Shown piece by piece: positions 49,214 through 55,640 of a stretch of 64,000 bases of DNA (within the stretch, counting starts at the first letter, position 1; every line of letters starts with the position of its first letter). Made by a program: the position numbers and the translations under genes. Source of the DNA: Zygnema circumcarinatum SAG 698-1b (lineage: Eukaryota; Plantae; Zygnematophyceae). A model generated the notes under the pieces. It was not told where the DNA came from. It was given only the letters and a program-made list of their open reading frames with translations, and searched no databases. The stretch lies in assembly GCA_037447605.1 (NCBI GenBank), contig CM074805.1:3815361-3879360 (forward strand), given 5' to 3'.

Positions 49214-49648
49214 ACCTCCAGAATCACCCGCCCGGGCCTGGACCAGCGCGTACGTGGAATAATTTAATGTCATATGCCACGTTTCGACATATTATTGGTA
49301 AATAAATGTTATCCTTGTCTTATTAGGGTACGAATTAGAGATCTGAATTTCGAAAAGTCAACTTCCCCCGCTCCAAACGATTCCCGTCAGCATGCGCGTG
49401 AGTACGTCAGCAACGTTGGACCACGGCAGTTACTTTTCAGAAGATGTCGTCACTTGAACCATGAAATCCAGACTTGGGAGTCCCCAAGCAAACCGGAGCT
49501 GCTAGTTGCCAACGTGGTGACGTCACCCCAACCTCCCCTCGGGCCGCCTGCTCATCCTGCCAAGAGCAGGAGCAGGGAAGGCCAACTGTCTCTGGGAGGG
49601 AGGAGGGAGGAGGGAGGAGGGAGGAGGGAGGGAGGAGGGCGGAGGGCC

Positions 49649-52600
49649 ATGGCGGAGGCGAGCTCGAAGCGGCCAGTGCTGTCCATGGAGGACCTGCGCG
49701 TGGTGGAGGTGCTGCACGACTACGAGCTCTCGCTCACCTCCTCGACGGGCTCCGTCCTCATGTCGCACATTCGCGAGAGCGCGTCCATGGGCGGCCACCG
49801 CCTGCACTCGCGGCGCAGCACCATCAGAGATTCCATGGCGACTCCATTGCGGCGCGAGAGAACGGTCGTATCAGATGATCTGTGGTTTCGGCTGCCCATT
49901 GTCAATCCTGAGAACAAGTACGGTATTGATCTTCGAAACGAATAGCTGTCTCTTTTTTTTATGTGGCTATTAGGATGTATGGCTCAACTGCATCACGCAG
50001 CGGCTTTTCTGAGGGCTACAGCACATTGCTTCCGTTACCCATTGCATGAAAAAATAATTTGTATTTGAACCTACCATTCCTCTTCGATTTCTGCGAAGAA
50101 ATGAGCCTCACTCACCGGTAAAAATAATATTATCTCCATTGATTTTTTGCGGGCATTCTATTCACCTCCATCAAGGCCGGCAGCGCTTTTATGCCGCCGT
50201 ATACATAGTTCTTGACTCCTCGTTCACGTACCCTGTGGACATAGCTTTCCTCAACTTGGCACATTTACGGCAGTGAATTCTCAGATTATGCATCAAACAG
50301 GAGTGAGGTGGCATCAGGAGTCGATTGCATCAAGTGAAGGAGCACTGCACTCAGTAAAAAAAACGATGCTTTTTTTTTTTCTAAACTCTCTCACGTACAT
50401 ATTTAGAAAAGGTCTTAGACTGAATTCGTCGGCGAAATAATCACTCTAAAAAATCTTTAGTAAGTAAAAAAAAACGTGTTTCAGGCAATCATTTAGCTTC
50501 AGGGCTCATCCTTGCGCGCAGGGAAGTGCTTAACATGTTTGTCTCACCCTCCTTTCTGTAGCCCAGGCCTTCTTTTCCACGGCTCAACCATTGGGGTTGG
50601 CAAGCGTATAGCTGACAGCGCAGCAAATGGCTAGTTTTTATTAAATAGCGAAGGTAGTACCTCATTTAAGTGAACTAATCATGAGCTAAATTTCTTTTGA
50701 CGAATGTTTTTTTCGATTTGGGAGGAGCACAAAAGCAGGTTTTTCCTCGTTTGGAGGAGAATTGTGATACTCTTTTCGGTGTATTCTGCATTCATCACCC
50801 CTGTTGAGTTTGGATTCTTCAAAGGCACTGGCCTTCCCTTCGTGTGGGAGATATGTGATATCTGCCTCAACTTGATCTTCTTCGCTGATATTTTGGTGAC
50901 TTTTCTTCTGTCTTACAAAGACAAAAAGACTCTGGGAGTTGTGACAGACCACCGACGCATCGCTTACAGGTCCGAAAGGGGACCCTTACTCTTTTCATGG
51001 CAGAACAGTGGTCCTTTGGAGTTTATTGCTTCAGGAGTAGCTCGTTCAGCTAACCTCCATGAATTGTTGGAGCTTATATATGAGAGGGTCCTTTGGGGGG
51101 CAACAGATACGCGAGAAGTTATCTTGTGTTTGACATCTTGTCCTGTTTGCCGTGGGACGCTTTGTACAAGGTGGGCATTTTTTTTTTTTTTTGTACTTCA
51201 TTGCTCCTATTTTATCGCAGGAAACTTTAGAATGCGAGTCCCGGAAAGCTGTGATCTCTTACCCGTAGCTTTGGACTGGATTATCTGATTTTTATGCTGT
51301 GTTTTCTCTTCATGTGTCGGATTTCTCCTTAACTTGGAGCATATCCTTTGCGTTCGGCGTGCAGGCTTCGAGAAGAAAGGAAGCTTTCCGTTTCTTAAAC
51401 TGGTTCAGGATTTATCGTATACGAAATGTTTTTCTATTCCTCAAAGAGTGCTTTCACTTTCTCTCTCTCCCGCCCCCTCTCTTCTCCCACTTCTCCCTCT
51501 CTCTCTTTCTCTCTCTTTCTCTCCCTCTCACCTCTCATCTTCCCTCCGCTCCTCTCCTCTCCTCTCTCTCCCTGACAACCAAGTTGCTACGCTTGTATAC
51601 AGCATATGAAACTAAACGCAGTTTGACAGCGCGGGAAAGTTCATGCTTGGCCTTAGTTTCCTTTTCATTTCCCTTCCTTTGGTTTCGTCTTAATTCGCTT
51701 TCTCCGTGCAGGTTGGAAAAGGACACTCGTCTGAACTATTTCCTTGTTCGCATCTGCCGGTTGGCCGTAACGGAGTTATATGGGACCCATTTGGCAGCGT
51801 GTCTTTTCTACTACCTCGCTACCACCGTTCCCTACCTTCCCTCTTCGCACAACTCCTGGATAAGTTCACTCACTCTCGGCTCTGTGGACTATGAGGACTA
51901 CAAGTCCCTAAGCCTCGGGAGGCGTTACGTGACATCTTTATACTGGTCGATAGTCACCATGGCCGGTGTAGGTGTGCTTCTTCTCTCTCTAGCAATCACA
52001 TAGGTTGTACGAAAACATTCCCTTCTATTGACATCATGGTATCTGCAATCCCTCAAGCGAGAAACGGCATCATGTTGCTGTGAAACAACGAATGAGCTTT
52101 GGATTGATGGTAAAGTTTGAAGTTTTGCAATATCACCTCTTGGGTTGCTTGCATGCAATGACTCGAATGTGACATGGTTCTTAGAAGATATATGAATTAT
52201 ATCAATTTTCGCATGAGGTGTTTTGGATGCATGCTGCAATTCAGGGTATGGCGACATCCATCCGGTCAACGAGAGGGAGATGATCTTTGCTATCATATAC
52301 GTCAGCATGGACATGGTTCTGGGTGCTTACCTTCTCGGCAACATAACGGCCCTTATTGTGCGGGGCTCGCACACCGAACGCTTTCGAGATTGTATGGCGG
52401 ATCTCAGAAAATGGGCCGACCGGTAGTGCAACTTATCCACCCCTTAGTGAAGTGATGTAAATTTGTATCCAAGTTCGGACTGGCTACTTGATGCGGCTGC
52501 CTAAACAGCAGATACAGGCCATCGTTTTTTAGCGCAAACAAAATATTCAAAGACTTGCATATTCCTTGTTATCATTGGATTGCTGTGCTATTGACCTCTG

Positions 52601-55600
52601 TGCATGATATTGTATCTACCTTCCTCATGCAGAAATGCGGTCCCCCCCGTTCTTCTTCACCAACTGAGAGAGCACATAAAGCTGTCATTTGCAACTGAAA
52701 AGGGGCATGAACACATAGTGAAGCATTTGCCTGCATCCATGCAAGCGAAGGTTGCCAGGACTCTGTACTGGCCCTGTGTAGCCAATGCCTATCTCTTCAA
52801 AAACTGCTCAGCAGAGTTCATCAATCAGCTGGTAAGCTTGACCTGCACGCAGTAAAAAATTACACTAAGGGGCTTCTTTGCAGGCATTGGGAGCTTGTAC
52901 AAACTGAAGCATGAAACTCAAGAGCTTTCACAAGGTCAACCTGCAAAGTATGCAGTTTAGTTACGATGTAAAGTAATGAGATGGAAGGAGTGTTGTGAAT
53001 TCTGCTTCGTAAGGTTGTGGCCCATGTCTGCCATTGATATCGTTGCTTTTGGCGGGATACAATGAAGGTTCCCCGCTTTCATGTGGAGCACTTTTTGCCA
53101 GGCGAAGTTTTGATATCGCATAAGGATGCGGGCGACCAGATGTACATCATCTTTGAGGGTATGCTGGTGCGTGACGTTACAACGGAGTCCACATTCAGCA
53201 GTAGGAGGGAGAGAGGTAGCTGCACTCTCTCACTTCTTTCAAGTGCACTTGTTTCTCTTCTTGAGAAGTGTCTCACATGCAATCCATGGCCACATTTGCG
53301 CCGTTGTTTGTCAATGGAGCAGGAGGAGATGGTGGTCAAAGGGGAGGAGGAGGTGACAGGTGTCACACGCCGAGGTGGCGGAGAGCTTGTTGGCGAACTT
53401 GCCCTCCTCTGCGGCATTCCGCAACCGTTCACAGTGTGGGTTGTGCAGCTAACCAAACTTCTGCGCATTGACAAGGCGAGCTTTACAAGGCTGCTCGAAA
53501 TGTATGTGAGGGACTCGCAGAAGATAGTGAGCAATCTCATGAATGTAAGCCCCATCTTACCTCCCCCCACTCCCCACCACTCTCTCATTCTCTCCCTCCA
53601 TCTCTCCTCCCCTCAGGTCCCCCCCTCCATCCCCCTCCCCCGCAGCTGCCCATCCCGATCACCTCCTAACGTAAGCAAACAAGGAGGGTAGTGCTCGTTG
53701 TAGGTGTCAATCATGCATAGCATGTCTATTTTTCACACGTCGGTCCCTTGAAAGAAAGTTCATTGCACCCATTTTGATTTCTCAGCCTGAAGTAGCCACT
53801 GAATTTAACATATGAGTAACCTTCTATTCAAGTTGATGTTGTGCAGAAATTAAAGGGCTCCGGTTGGCAGGATTTGCCGAACCGAGTAGAGCTCCTTCTT
53901 GAGCTGCACGAGCCGCAGCTGACAACGACTCTTATTGGGGCAGCGGCCCGAGGGGATATGGAGAGTATTAAGGGGCTTATAAGAGGGGGAGTGGGGGTGA
54001 ATTCCAACGATCATGATGGGAGGAGTGCTCTTCACTTGGCAGCAGCTCGTGGGTTTGACGACATTTGCTTGTTTCTCATTGCAAGTGGTGCGGATGTGAA
54101 TGCAAAAGGTGAGTTCACGTTCACGGGTGTATGCGTGCTACAGTTATCAGTTTGGAAGGGCAGGTTTATCTCAGAAGTTTTTGGTTTCTCTGGAATTATG
54201 CGTGCAGATCACTCTGGAAAAAACGCCATGTCTGAAGCAGTTCAGAGCGGACATGACAGCACTGCAATGCTCCTTCAGAAGAATGGAGGAAGGGTAGAGC
54301 TGGCAGACCCTGCTAGGGAGCTTTGCACTGCTATTGTTTCCTTCAATATGCCCTACCTAGAGGTACGGAGCAACACATTTGCCCATTTGCATCGTCGTAA
54401 TGATGAGTGCTCCGGTTCACGAATTTCTCGACTTCAAGGTATTTATATTGGCTGATGCAGCTGCTTGTTGCTGCCTTATCAGCGTCTTCTCATTCATGGT
54501 GCGGACCCAAACGTTCGCGACTACGATTCACGGACCCCTCTTCATGTGGCAGCCGCAGAGGGCTACTATCATATGGTCAGGGTATTGCTCTCCCATGGGG
54601 CCAACCCCTATGCTCGAGATCGGTGGGAAAACTATCCCATTGATGAAGCTCACCGCAGCGGATGTCAACCTCTCATCGCCCTCCTGCAAGATGCCATGGA
54701 GGCGGAAAAGGCACATGGAAATGATCCTCCGGCAGGGGATGCACATAAGGTGGGAATGAACAGATACATCGGAAGCAGAACTGCAGGAACAGAGGAGATG
54801 GAAGTGGAAACCTATTCAAATATCGCAGCAGACGTGAAGGGCAAGATCGAACAAGGAGAGTCGCATGCATCCTCGTCGGCTTTATCAGAACAGCTTTCAG
54901 CTGCTTCACAACCGGTTGAAGACTCCCTCCAACACAGGTGGATTAGCCACGACATCCAAATGGAAGTTGTGTCTGATGGAAACTCTCATCCTAGCTGTAG
55001 TAGTCCATCCCTAAATCACAACACGGGCCCTGAAGCTGCTTCAATTTCAGCAGACTGCAGACATATGGGCCACCCAGCTGCAGGATTAGAAATCCTCCAC
55101 GTCTCCAGAAACAGGTCTTATTCAGGGGAAAGCCCTCCCGCTGAGGGAGGGACAGAACTTTATTCCTCTGCCCAAAATAGCAAGTTTTCTCTCGCTTCAG
55201 ATTTCCTTCCCTCGCCCTCTTCTCCAATTCAGGAGCAGGCAGAGATTGCCAGGGGATTCCATGGCCGCAGTAATAATAGTCATAAGCAATGGCCCTCGTC
55301 CTCAAGGATGTGGCAGAGAGGTGGAAGCCCTCAGAGATCTCCTACCACTCCTCGCATCACTGTGCATCCGTACCATCCATGGACGCCAAAGGGGCCAAAA
55401 AGGAGGCCTGCACGACTTCTCTTCCTTCCGTCAACGATGAACGAACTCTTGGCAGATGCCAGCAGACAATTTGGAATGAACTTCACTCAGATTCTCACGA
55501 AGTCAGGTGCAGAGATTGTTGCAATTGAGCTTGTCCTGGATGGTGATGAAATTCATGCAGCGACAGACGATGACTCCCATTTAGGTGAGCCCTTGGTGCT

Positions 55601-55640
55601 AGTAGGAAGAGAAAGGAGGGGGAAGGGAGTGACAAGATAG
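49649..55640 (+). CDS. Plant Shaker-like voltage-gated K+ channel of outward-rectifier (SKOR/GORK) type: S1-S6, CNBD, ankyrin repeats, KHA domain
   Basis: S1 VWRRIVILFSVYSAFITPVEFGFF; S4 FLNWFRIYRIRNVF..LEKDTRLNY; pore YWSIVTMAGVGYGDIHPVN; S6 DMVLGAYLLGNITALIVRGS (outward-rectifier signature); CNBD FLPGEVLI...GELALLCGIPQPFTV; ankyrins DHDGRSALHLAAARG and DYDSRTPLHVAAAEG; KHA RITVHPYHPW...LPSTMNELL. Confidence 0.95.

Follow-up and report, generated by a model that had tools for sequence, protein, structure and literature searches.

The window analysed here, a stretch of 64,000 nucleotides from the zygnematophycean alga Zygnema circumcarinatum SAG 698-1b (assembly GCA_037447605.1, contig CM074805.1, forward-strand positions 3,815,361 to 3,879,360), harbours a 13-exon gene of the plant Shaker K+ channel family that carries a glycine at the threonine position of its selectivity filter. 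Its 13 exons together form an uninterrupted reading frame of 1059 codons, and every splice site is of the GT..AG type (Table 1). Exon junctions were taken from RNA contigs, two repeat-masked junctions being placed by homology and contig arithmetic; the exon 1 donor, AAC AA|gtacgg at 49917, is joined in the RNA contigs to 50739, yielding PENKFFLVW. Pfam comparison exon by exon returned Ion_trans (PF00520), Ion_trans_2 (PF07885), cNMP_binding (PF00027), ankyrin families and KHA (PF11834), and this domain order is that of the plant Shaker architecture. The basic residues of the voltage-sensing S4 segment are regularly spaced, RFLNWFRIYRIRNVFLFLK of the window aligning to RYFVLFRVYRVRKV of the Riccia and Marchantia outward-rectifier proteins. 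Immediately 5' of the start codon, at 49590-49646, lies a purine-rich GGAGGGAGG repeat, likely part of the 5' untranslated region, which was masked in read mapping.

The filter is encoded across the junction of exons 5 and 6. Exon 5 ends with TAC TGG TCG ATA GTC ACC ATG GCC GGT GTA G|gtgtgc at 51971 and exon 6 resumes with ttcag|GG TAT GGC GAC from 52245; once joined, the two exons encode YWSIVTMAGVGYGD, with the filter TMAGVGYGD. Set against the canonical signature T-x-x-T-x-G-Y-G-D, the Thr required at the fourth position is replaced by Gly301 (GGT) in both DNA and RNA, and the remaining signature residues (T298, G303-Y304-G305 and D306) are kept. In the PDB match alignment, Gly301 stands opposite the Thr that closes the IVTMAT motif of GORK. 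Contigs from four runs, each belonging to a separate study (X7, X11, X12 and X20), were mapped on positions 49600-55599, and the presence of nine GT..AG joints in every run identifies these contigs as RNA assemblies. The junction 51971|52245 (listed as 51969 to 52243, the cut lying two letters further on, with 273 letters skipped) was found in spliced contigs of all four studies, the depth over intron 5 was zero, and along the 6 kb no differing letters, insertions or deletions were detected in the RNA contigs of the four runs. Since the spliced contigs carry the junction without differing letters, the mRNA encodes GVGYG, and the recurrence of the exact junction in four RNA studies with zero base differences excludes both a sequencing error and alternative splicing of the filter. 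The other GT donors between 51962 and 51975 would cause a frameshift or leave the filter two residues short (TMAGYGD), and none of them was used in the RNA contigs; an assembly error or RNA editing was likewise ruled out, as no base differed in the four RNA studies. Every sampled word of the stretch is also contained in six DNA runs from three studies, runs that may stem from the source strain. The sequence-only reading had proposed this exon junction, and its letters and coordinates are as it quoted them; it had argued correctly that a change from ACN to GGN needs two substitutions, its judgement that a single sequencing error was unlikely agrees with the RNA data, and the outcome that it named as fatal, a cDNA with TVGYG or another splice form, did not appear, the RNA contigs showing only the GVGYG junction. 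The locus thus holds a transcribed, correctly spliced SKOR/GORK-type gene with a GVGYG filter.

Table 1. Features of the Shaker-type gene in the window (positions are those of the 64,000-nucleotide stretch)
Feature	Positions	Strand	Basis
Coding region ATG to TGA, 13 exons, plant Shaker outward-rectifier (Kout) type, 1059 residues	49649..55831	+	RNA junctions, open frame, Pfam
Exon 1	49649-49917	+	
Exon 2	50739-50969	+	
Exon 3	51107-51170	+	
Exon 4: S4 voltage sensor (RFLNWFRIYRIRNVFLFLK)	51365-51447	+	Alignment with Riccia, Marchantia and Spirogloea Kout proteins
Intron 4: 264 nt = 88 codons, partly CT-rich, in frame, no stop	51448-51711	+	RNA contigs, translation
Exon 5: end of S4-S5 linker, S5, long S5-P loop, pore helix, first filter half (…YWSIVTMAGVG)	51712-51971	+	RNA junctions, PDB matches
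GGT codon = Gly301, at the filter Thr position (KcsA T75, SKOR T288, GORK T271)	51965-51967	+	DNA, RNA, alignment
Intron 5: 273 nt, GT..AG, phase 1, cuts the first Gly codon of GYG	51972-52244	+	Joint in 4/4 RNA runs
Exon 6: (G)YGDIHPVN, S6, start of C-linker	52245-52422	+	RNA junctions, PDB matches
S6 motif D-M-V (Kout 'DMI' position; GORK also DMV)	52310-52318	+	Alignment to GORK and SKOR
Exon 7	52633-52831	+	
Exon 8	53068-53166	+	
Exon 9	53323-53544	+	
Cyclic-nucleotide-binding homology domain, exons 8-9	53068-53544	+	Pfam PF00027, E=6.8e-12
Exon 10	53847-54108	+	
Exon 11	54208-54362	+	
Exon 12	54483-55584	+	
Ankyrin repeat region, exons 10 to 12, end approximate	53847-54700	+	Pfam Ank_2, Ank, Ank_4
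KHA tetramerisation/clustering domain	55353-55550	+	Pfam PF11834, E=5.3e-17, residues 300-365 of window 54456-55637
Exon 13: short last exon and stop codon	55776-55831	+	Loose end AAGAGTCGC… after 55584 in 4/4 runs; acceptor and stop read from sequence

Several features place the gene product, by its sequence, in the outward-rectifier (SKOR/GORK-type, Kout) branch of the plant Shaker family, of which it is a pore-forming subunit. Searched against PDB, exon 5 preferred GORK (E=3.6e-24) and SKOR (5e-22) over KAT1 (4e-11) and AKT1 (3e-9), and exon 6 showed the same preference (SKOR 1.9e-22, GORK 7e-22). Riedelsberger et al. distinguished Kout from inward-rectifying (Kin) channels by D-M-I in S6 (N-L-G in Kin), a longer S5-P loop and SFFT in S1 (AWxx in Kin) (PMC4565715). 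The window gene has D-M-V in S6, exactly as GORK does, and 86 residues of its S5-P region align to 84 in GORK/SKOR and to 75 in KAT1/AKT1, in keeping with the loop about eight residues longer than in Kin. The x positions of its TxxTxGYGD signature are M and A, as in the Kout criteria (PMC4565715), and its S1 motif S-A-F-I-T is alike, not identical, to the S-S-F-F-T of SKOR-type proteins. In a tree built on 157 pore-domain columns, the gene fell inside the Kout clade with 100/100 support, apart from the Kin proteins. Its nearest named relatives are those of Riccia fluitans, Spirogloea muscicola, Mesotaenium endlicherianum and Closterium, and the overall identity to liverwort and zygnematophyte Kout proteins amounts to ~38-43%. 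Compared with Arabidopsis GORK and SKOR (PDB 8wfz, 9khe, 8jet and others), the window gene has in common the domain order S1-S6, cyclic-nucleotide-binding domain (CNBD), ankyrin and KHA, the long S5-P loop, D-M-V/I in S6, the TMAxVGYGDIH context and the intron site within GYG. It differs from them in the filter, where their Thr (T271/T288) is Gly301, in its greater length (1059 residues), owed to low-complexity sequence inserted between the ankyrin region and KHA, and in an in-frame intron of the S4-S5 linker which, unlike the situation in GORK/SKOR, is kept in most assembled transcripts.

Few residues in biology are as strongly conserved as the filter Thr, and the TVGYG motif itself is near-universal. 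Among 119 listed land-plant SKOR/GORK-type proteins, the filter motif was readable in 117, all of them with Thr and 113 with TMATV, which bears out the TMATVGYGD baseline assumed for SKOR/GORK in the sequence-only reading. A scan of JGI metagenomes with a degenerate pattern gave a similar picture: the best 80 Shaker-like loci comprised 72 with Thr (72/77 of those readable), one with Ser, one with Met, three with Asn and three incomplete motifs, and no Gly at the filter site. The loci with Asn (TMANVG; L046-L048) or Met (TMAMVG; L012) are low-GC, land-plant-like SKOR-type loci, the former also being two residues short in the S5-P loop; they may represent decayed copies or further natural variants. 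A word-index search with exon 5, which covers only proteins of 47-150 residues and is silent on longer relatives, gave no match. Seeded with a Riccia protein (P0001) it returned land-plant T-type proteins only, and seeded with a Closterium protein (P0051) it returned only Closterium S-type together with more distant T-type proteins. A full-text literature search found no paper on GVGYG in a K+ channel.

A HMMER search of exon 5 against 1.84 billion representatives provided 125 hits, among which three groups of short genomic fragments stop at the same exon boundary with a residue other than Thr. Two of them, P0047 (loci L001-L004) and the P0053/P0126 cluster (L005 and L006), read TMAGVG, and the third, P0049 (L007 and L008), reads TMAAVG. 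In L001 and L005 a canonical phase-1 intron follows, after which the next exon starts with GYGDIHPVN or GYGDFHPVN, and this intron position inside GYG is common to the window, L001, L005, L007 and land-plant loci. Five full-length Closterium proteins, CLOM_g17429 (GJP32833.1) and four orthologues, carry TMASLGYGD, and other Closterium paralogues have TMATIGYGD. Of the algal relatives retrieved, L001-L006 bear Gly at this site, the residue for which a survey had been suggested from the sequence, L007 and L008 bear Ala, and the Closterium S-type proteins bear Ser. The fragments share no more than 42-53% of their residues with the window exon, and the codons at the filter site differ as well, GGT being used in the window, GGA in L001 and L005 and GCA in L007. 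The Ala codon of L007 is a one-step intermediate between Thr and Gly, and such an intermediate state thus exists in nature. The preservation of Gly across a deep divergence argues against an error or a recent decay, and the proposal of a natural filter variant holds in that, as judged from these sequences, Gly at the filter site is a heritable variant recurring in divergent algal relatives. The Closterium CLOM_g17429 group and L001-L008 resemble the window gene in being algal Kout-type genes of the same exon structure with a small non-Thr filter residue (S, A or G), and differ from it by W-D-[LM]-L in S6 and by their own clade: within Kout, L001 (G), L005 (G), L007 (A) and the Closterium S-type were recovered together with 99/93 support. 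The window gene stood outside this G/A/S clade in the best tree with weak support (83/73), and forcing all the non-Thr sequences into a single clade cost only 1.1 log-likelihood units (approximately unbiased test, AU, p=0.418).

Two further observations concern these relatives. P0112 (1330 residues, JGI metagenome) and P0117 (1241 residues, ENA) are tandem proteins with two Ion_trans and two CNBD repeats, in which the first repeat has the filter TMTGVGYGD or TMTAVGYGD and the second TMTTVGYGD, so that they constitute natural mixed-filter channels. At ~1075-1225 of L001, the intron that splits GYG holds incomplete and decayed copies of the first part of the next exon (…GYGDIPPV…, …VYGDTHS…), a pattern that points to local tandem duplication around the acceptor.

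The window protein could be a modulatory or 'silent' subunit, active solely when it assembles into heterotetramers with a Kout subunit of the canonical TVGYG type, in a manner comparable to AtKC1 with AKT1, the mixed pore retaining at most two Thr hydroxyls at ion site S4. The occurrence of T-type (TMATIGYGD) together with S-type (TMASLGYGD) Kout paralogues in Closterium genomes would agree with such a role. So would the tandem proteins, in which a first pore of G or A type is followed by a second of T type and which show that mixed pores exist in nature, and the presence of the assembly domains KHA and ankyrin in the window protein. The sequence, however, shows neither a retention motif nor a degenerate S4 segment nor any other mark of a silent subunit, and we consider this role rather unlikely.

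The transcripts showed a second peculiarity. Intron 4 was retained in most assembled transcripts, namely in contigs of X7, X12 and X20 (three of the four runs) that were spliced at every other intron. In X7 record 15, X12 record 5 and X20 record 10 the record coordinates run continuously from 51365 to 51969. The arithmetic of the contigs agrees with this, since the 277 letters between the exon 2 piece and the 51574-51969 piece of X12 record 5 equal 4 + 64 + 209, and the 532 upstream letters of X7 record 15 equal 209 + 64 + 231 + 28. The X11 contigs break at 51449 and resume at 51712, the pattern expected of a bubble caused by splicing at the predicted GT and AG, and hence spliced and retained transcripts are both present. 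Retention would place 88 hydrophobic, Ser/Leu/Pro-rich residues (CFHFLSLPPP…SLSPCR) between S4 and S5 with no stop codon. Unspliced intron 1 (49890-50768) was also seen, as separate contigs of low depth (~9-20 vs 46-90 for exons), which suggests some pre-mRNA or DNA in the RNA runs; introns 5 and 9, unlike intron 1, had zero depth. As to the earlier description of an otherwise intact channel, the part concerning the open frame over 13 exons and the SKOR/GORK type stands, and the in-frame intron retained in three of the four runs qualifies the word intact.

Retention of intron 4, taken together with the filter change, could also be read as relaxed constraint on a gene drifting towards loss of function, with no working channel as its product. 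The lack of a close orthologue in the exon 5 word-index search (proteins of 47-150 residues only), the fairly long branch of the window gene (0.56) and the existence of land-plant-like loci with Asn or Met at the site (L046-L048 and L012), which may be decayed copies, are compatible with such a drift. Against it, no stop interrupts the 1059 codons of the 13 exons, splice sites are canonical throughout, expression is seen in four independent studies with similar depth across exons, all other diagnostic residues are conserved, and the retained intron 4 itself keeps the frame; moreover, the same Gly in genes diverged to ~45-50% identity argues for selection. Decay of the gene appears, in consequence, very improbable.

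In K+ channels the Thr side chains form the lower ring of ion site S4. A Gly at this position would keep the backbone carbonyl and lose the four side-chain hydroxyls of that ring, and the filter should then work as a three-site, carbonyl-only filter opening directly onto the cavity. Engineered changes of the same residue, with the same loss of the hydroxyl ring, offer the closest experimental counterparts. According to PMC11251424, site S4 is lost and S2 is less occupied in KcsA T75C and T75G, conductance of the KcsA T75X mutants is 3-17-fold lower, K+ selectivity persists in Shaker T442A and Kv1.5 T480A and is lost in MthK T59A and NaK2K T63A, and simulations of KcsA T75A show reduced selectivity with water and ions permeating together, the effects thus varying by channel from selective to non-selective. 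These mutants are laboratory-made variants of bacterial and animal channels, whereas the window gene is natural, transcribed and of the plant-lineage CNBD type. In the light of the published KcsA, Shaker, MthK and NaK2K mutants, the change in selectivity, K+ sensing or conductance proposed in the sequence-only reading is plausible. In SKOR/GORK, external K+ acts on gating via pore occupancy, and mutations in TxGYG or the adjoining S6 weaken or abolish this response (PMC8644596); GORK and SKOR also require submillimolar external K+ against conductance collapse (bioRxiv 10.1101/2021.06.01.446568).

By analogy with these channels, the window gene probably, though by a modest balance of judgement, encodes a K+-preferring outward rectifier of lower unitary conductance whose K+-dependent gating would be altered through loss of the hydroxyl ring at site S4. 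Preference for K+ would most likely be kept, with a unitary conductance several-fold lower and a changed occupancy of the inner sites, as in KcsA T75C/G/A, Shaker T442A and Kv1.5 T480A. In Kout channels, pore occupancy by K+ serves as the gating ligand, acting on the neighbouring D-M-I/V region of S6, so that the main physiological effect would be an altered coupling between filter and gate. Activation or pore collapse might then depend differently on external K+, which could be relevant to an alga living in very dilute K+.

Several points weigh against this proposal. The functional statements are drawn wholly by analogy with mutants of distant channels, and the same class of substitution made MthK T59A and NaK2K T63A non-selective (PMC11251424), so that K+ selectivity would not be assured. 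The canonical protein may be a minor product, as most assembled transcripts keep intron 4. The window gene did not group with the other G-bearing genes in the best tree, one or two origins being both compatible with the data (AU p=0.418), and those other G-bearing genes are environmental fragments, whose sample identifiers occur in no paper found by the full-text search.

The natural channels with a residue other than Thr at this site bear on selectivity as well. HCN channels, voltage-gated members of the CNBD superfamily, naturally have Cys at the filter site (CIGYG) and resemble the window gene in carrying a non-Thr residue there; they differ from it in that the residue is Cys, not Gly, and in being activated by hyperpolarisation. 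Their weak selectivity stems chiefly from an altered orientation of the outer-filter Tyr. HCN channels pass Na+ despite GYG (PMC4565715), and this permeation, together with the non-selective NaK2K T63A and MthK T59A and the less selective KcsA T75A of the simulations (PMC11251424), could suggest that Gly lowers selectivity in the window channel too. It would then provide a depolarisation-activated, weakly selective cation pathway for K+ with Na+ and/or NH4+ in place of a K+-selective outward rectifier, on the rationale that discrimination between K+ and Na+ requires at least four contiguous filter sites. The eukaryotic voltage-gated channels Shaker T442A and Kv1.5 T480A stayed, however, K+-selective (PMC11251424), and the rest of the signature T-M-A-x-V-G-Y-G-D and the pore helix YWSIVT are fully canonical in the window protein; we therefore regard a weakly selective pathway as improbable.

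The gene family and the role of the filter Thr are already well known, and what is new here is a natural, expressed Gly at this position together with a small algal group bearing G, A or S. Mutants at the filter Thr are central to the arguments on ion occupancy, water co-permeation and filter-gate coupling, and the Zygnema gene makes it possible to examine these questions by structure determination and electrophysiology on a wild-type protein. A G301T revertant, along with the reciprocal change in SKOR/GORK, could probe the sensing of external K+ through pore occupancy in plant outward rectifiers. The gene also represents a marker for the diversification of Kout channels in algal relatives before TMATVGYGD became fixed in land plants. 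More tentatively, and as a possibility that we would not yet favour, an ancient sub-type of outward Shaker channel may have been preserved by selection in streptophyte algae, its Thr ring at ion site S4 replaced by G, A or S and its three-site filter giving it a physiological mode of its own. If so, this mode might consist of K+ efflux that does not collapse when fresh water or soil films offer only traces of external K+, or of a voltage-gated outward pathway also passing Na+ or NH4+, and the sub-type would offer a natural counterpart of the T75G and T75A mutants in the debate on K+ channel conduction.

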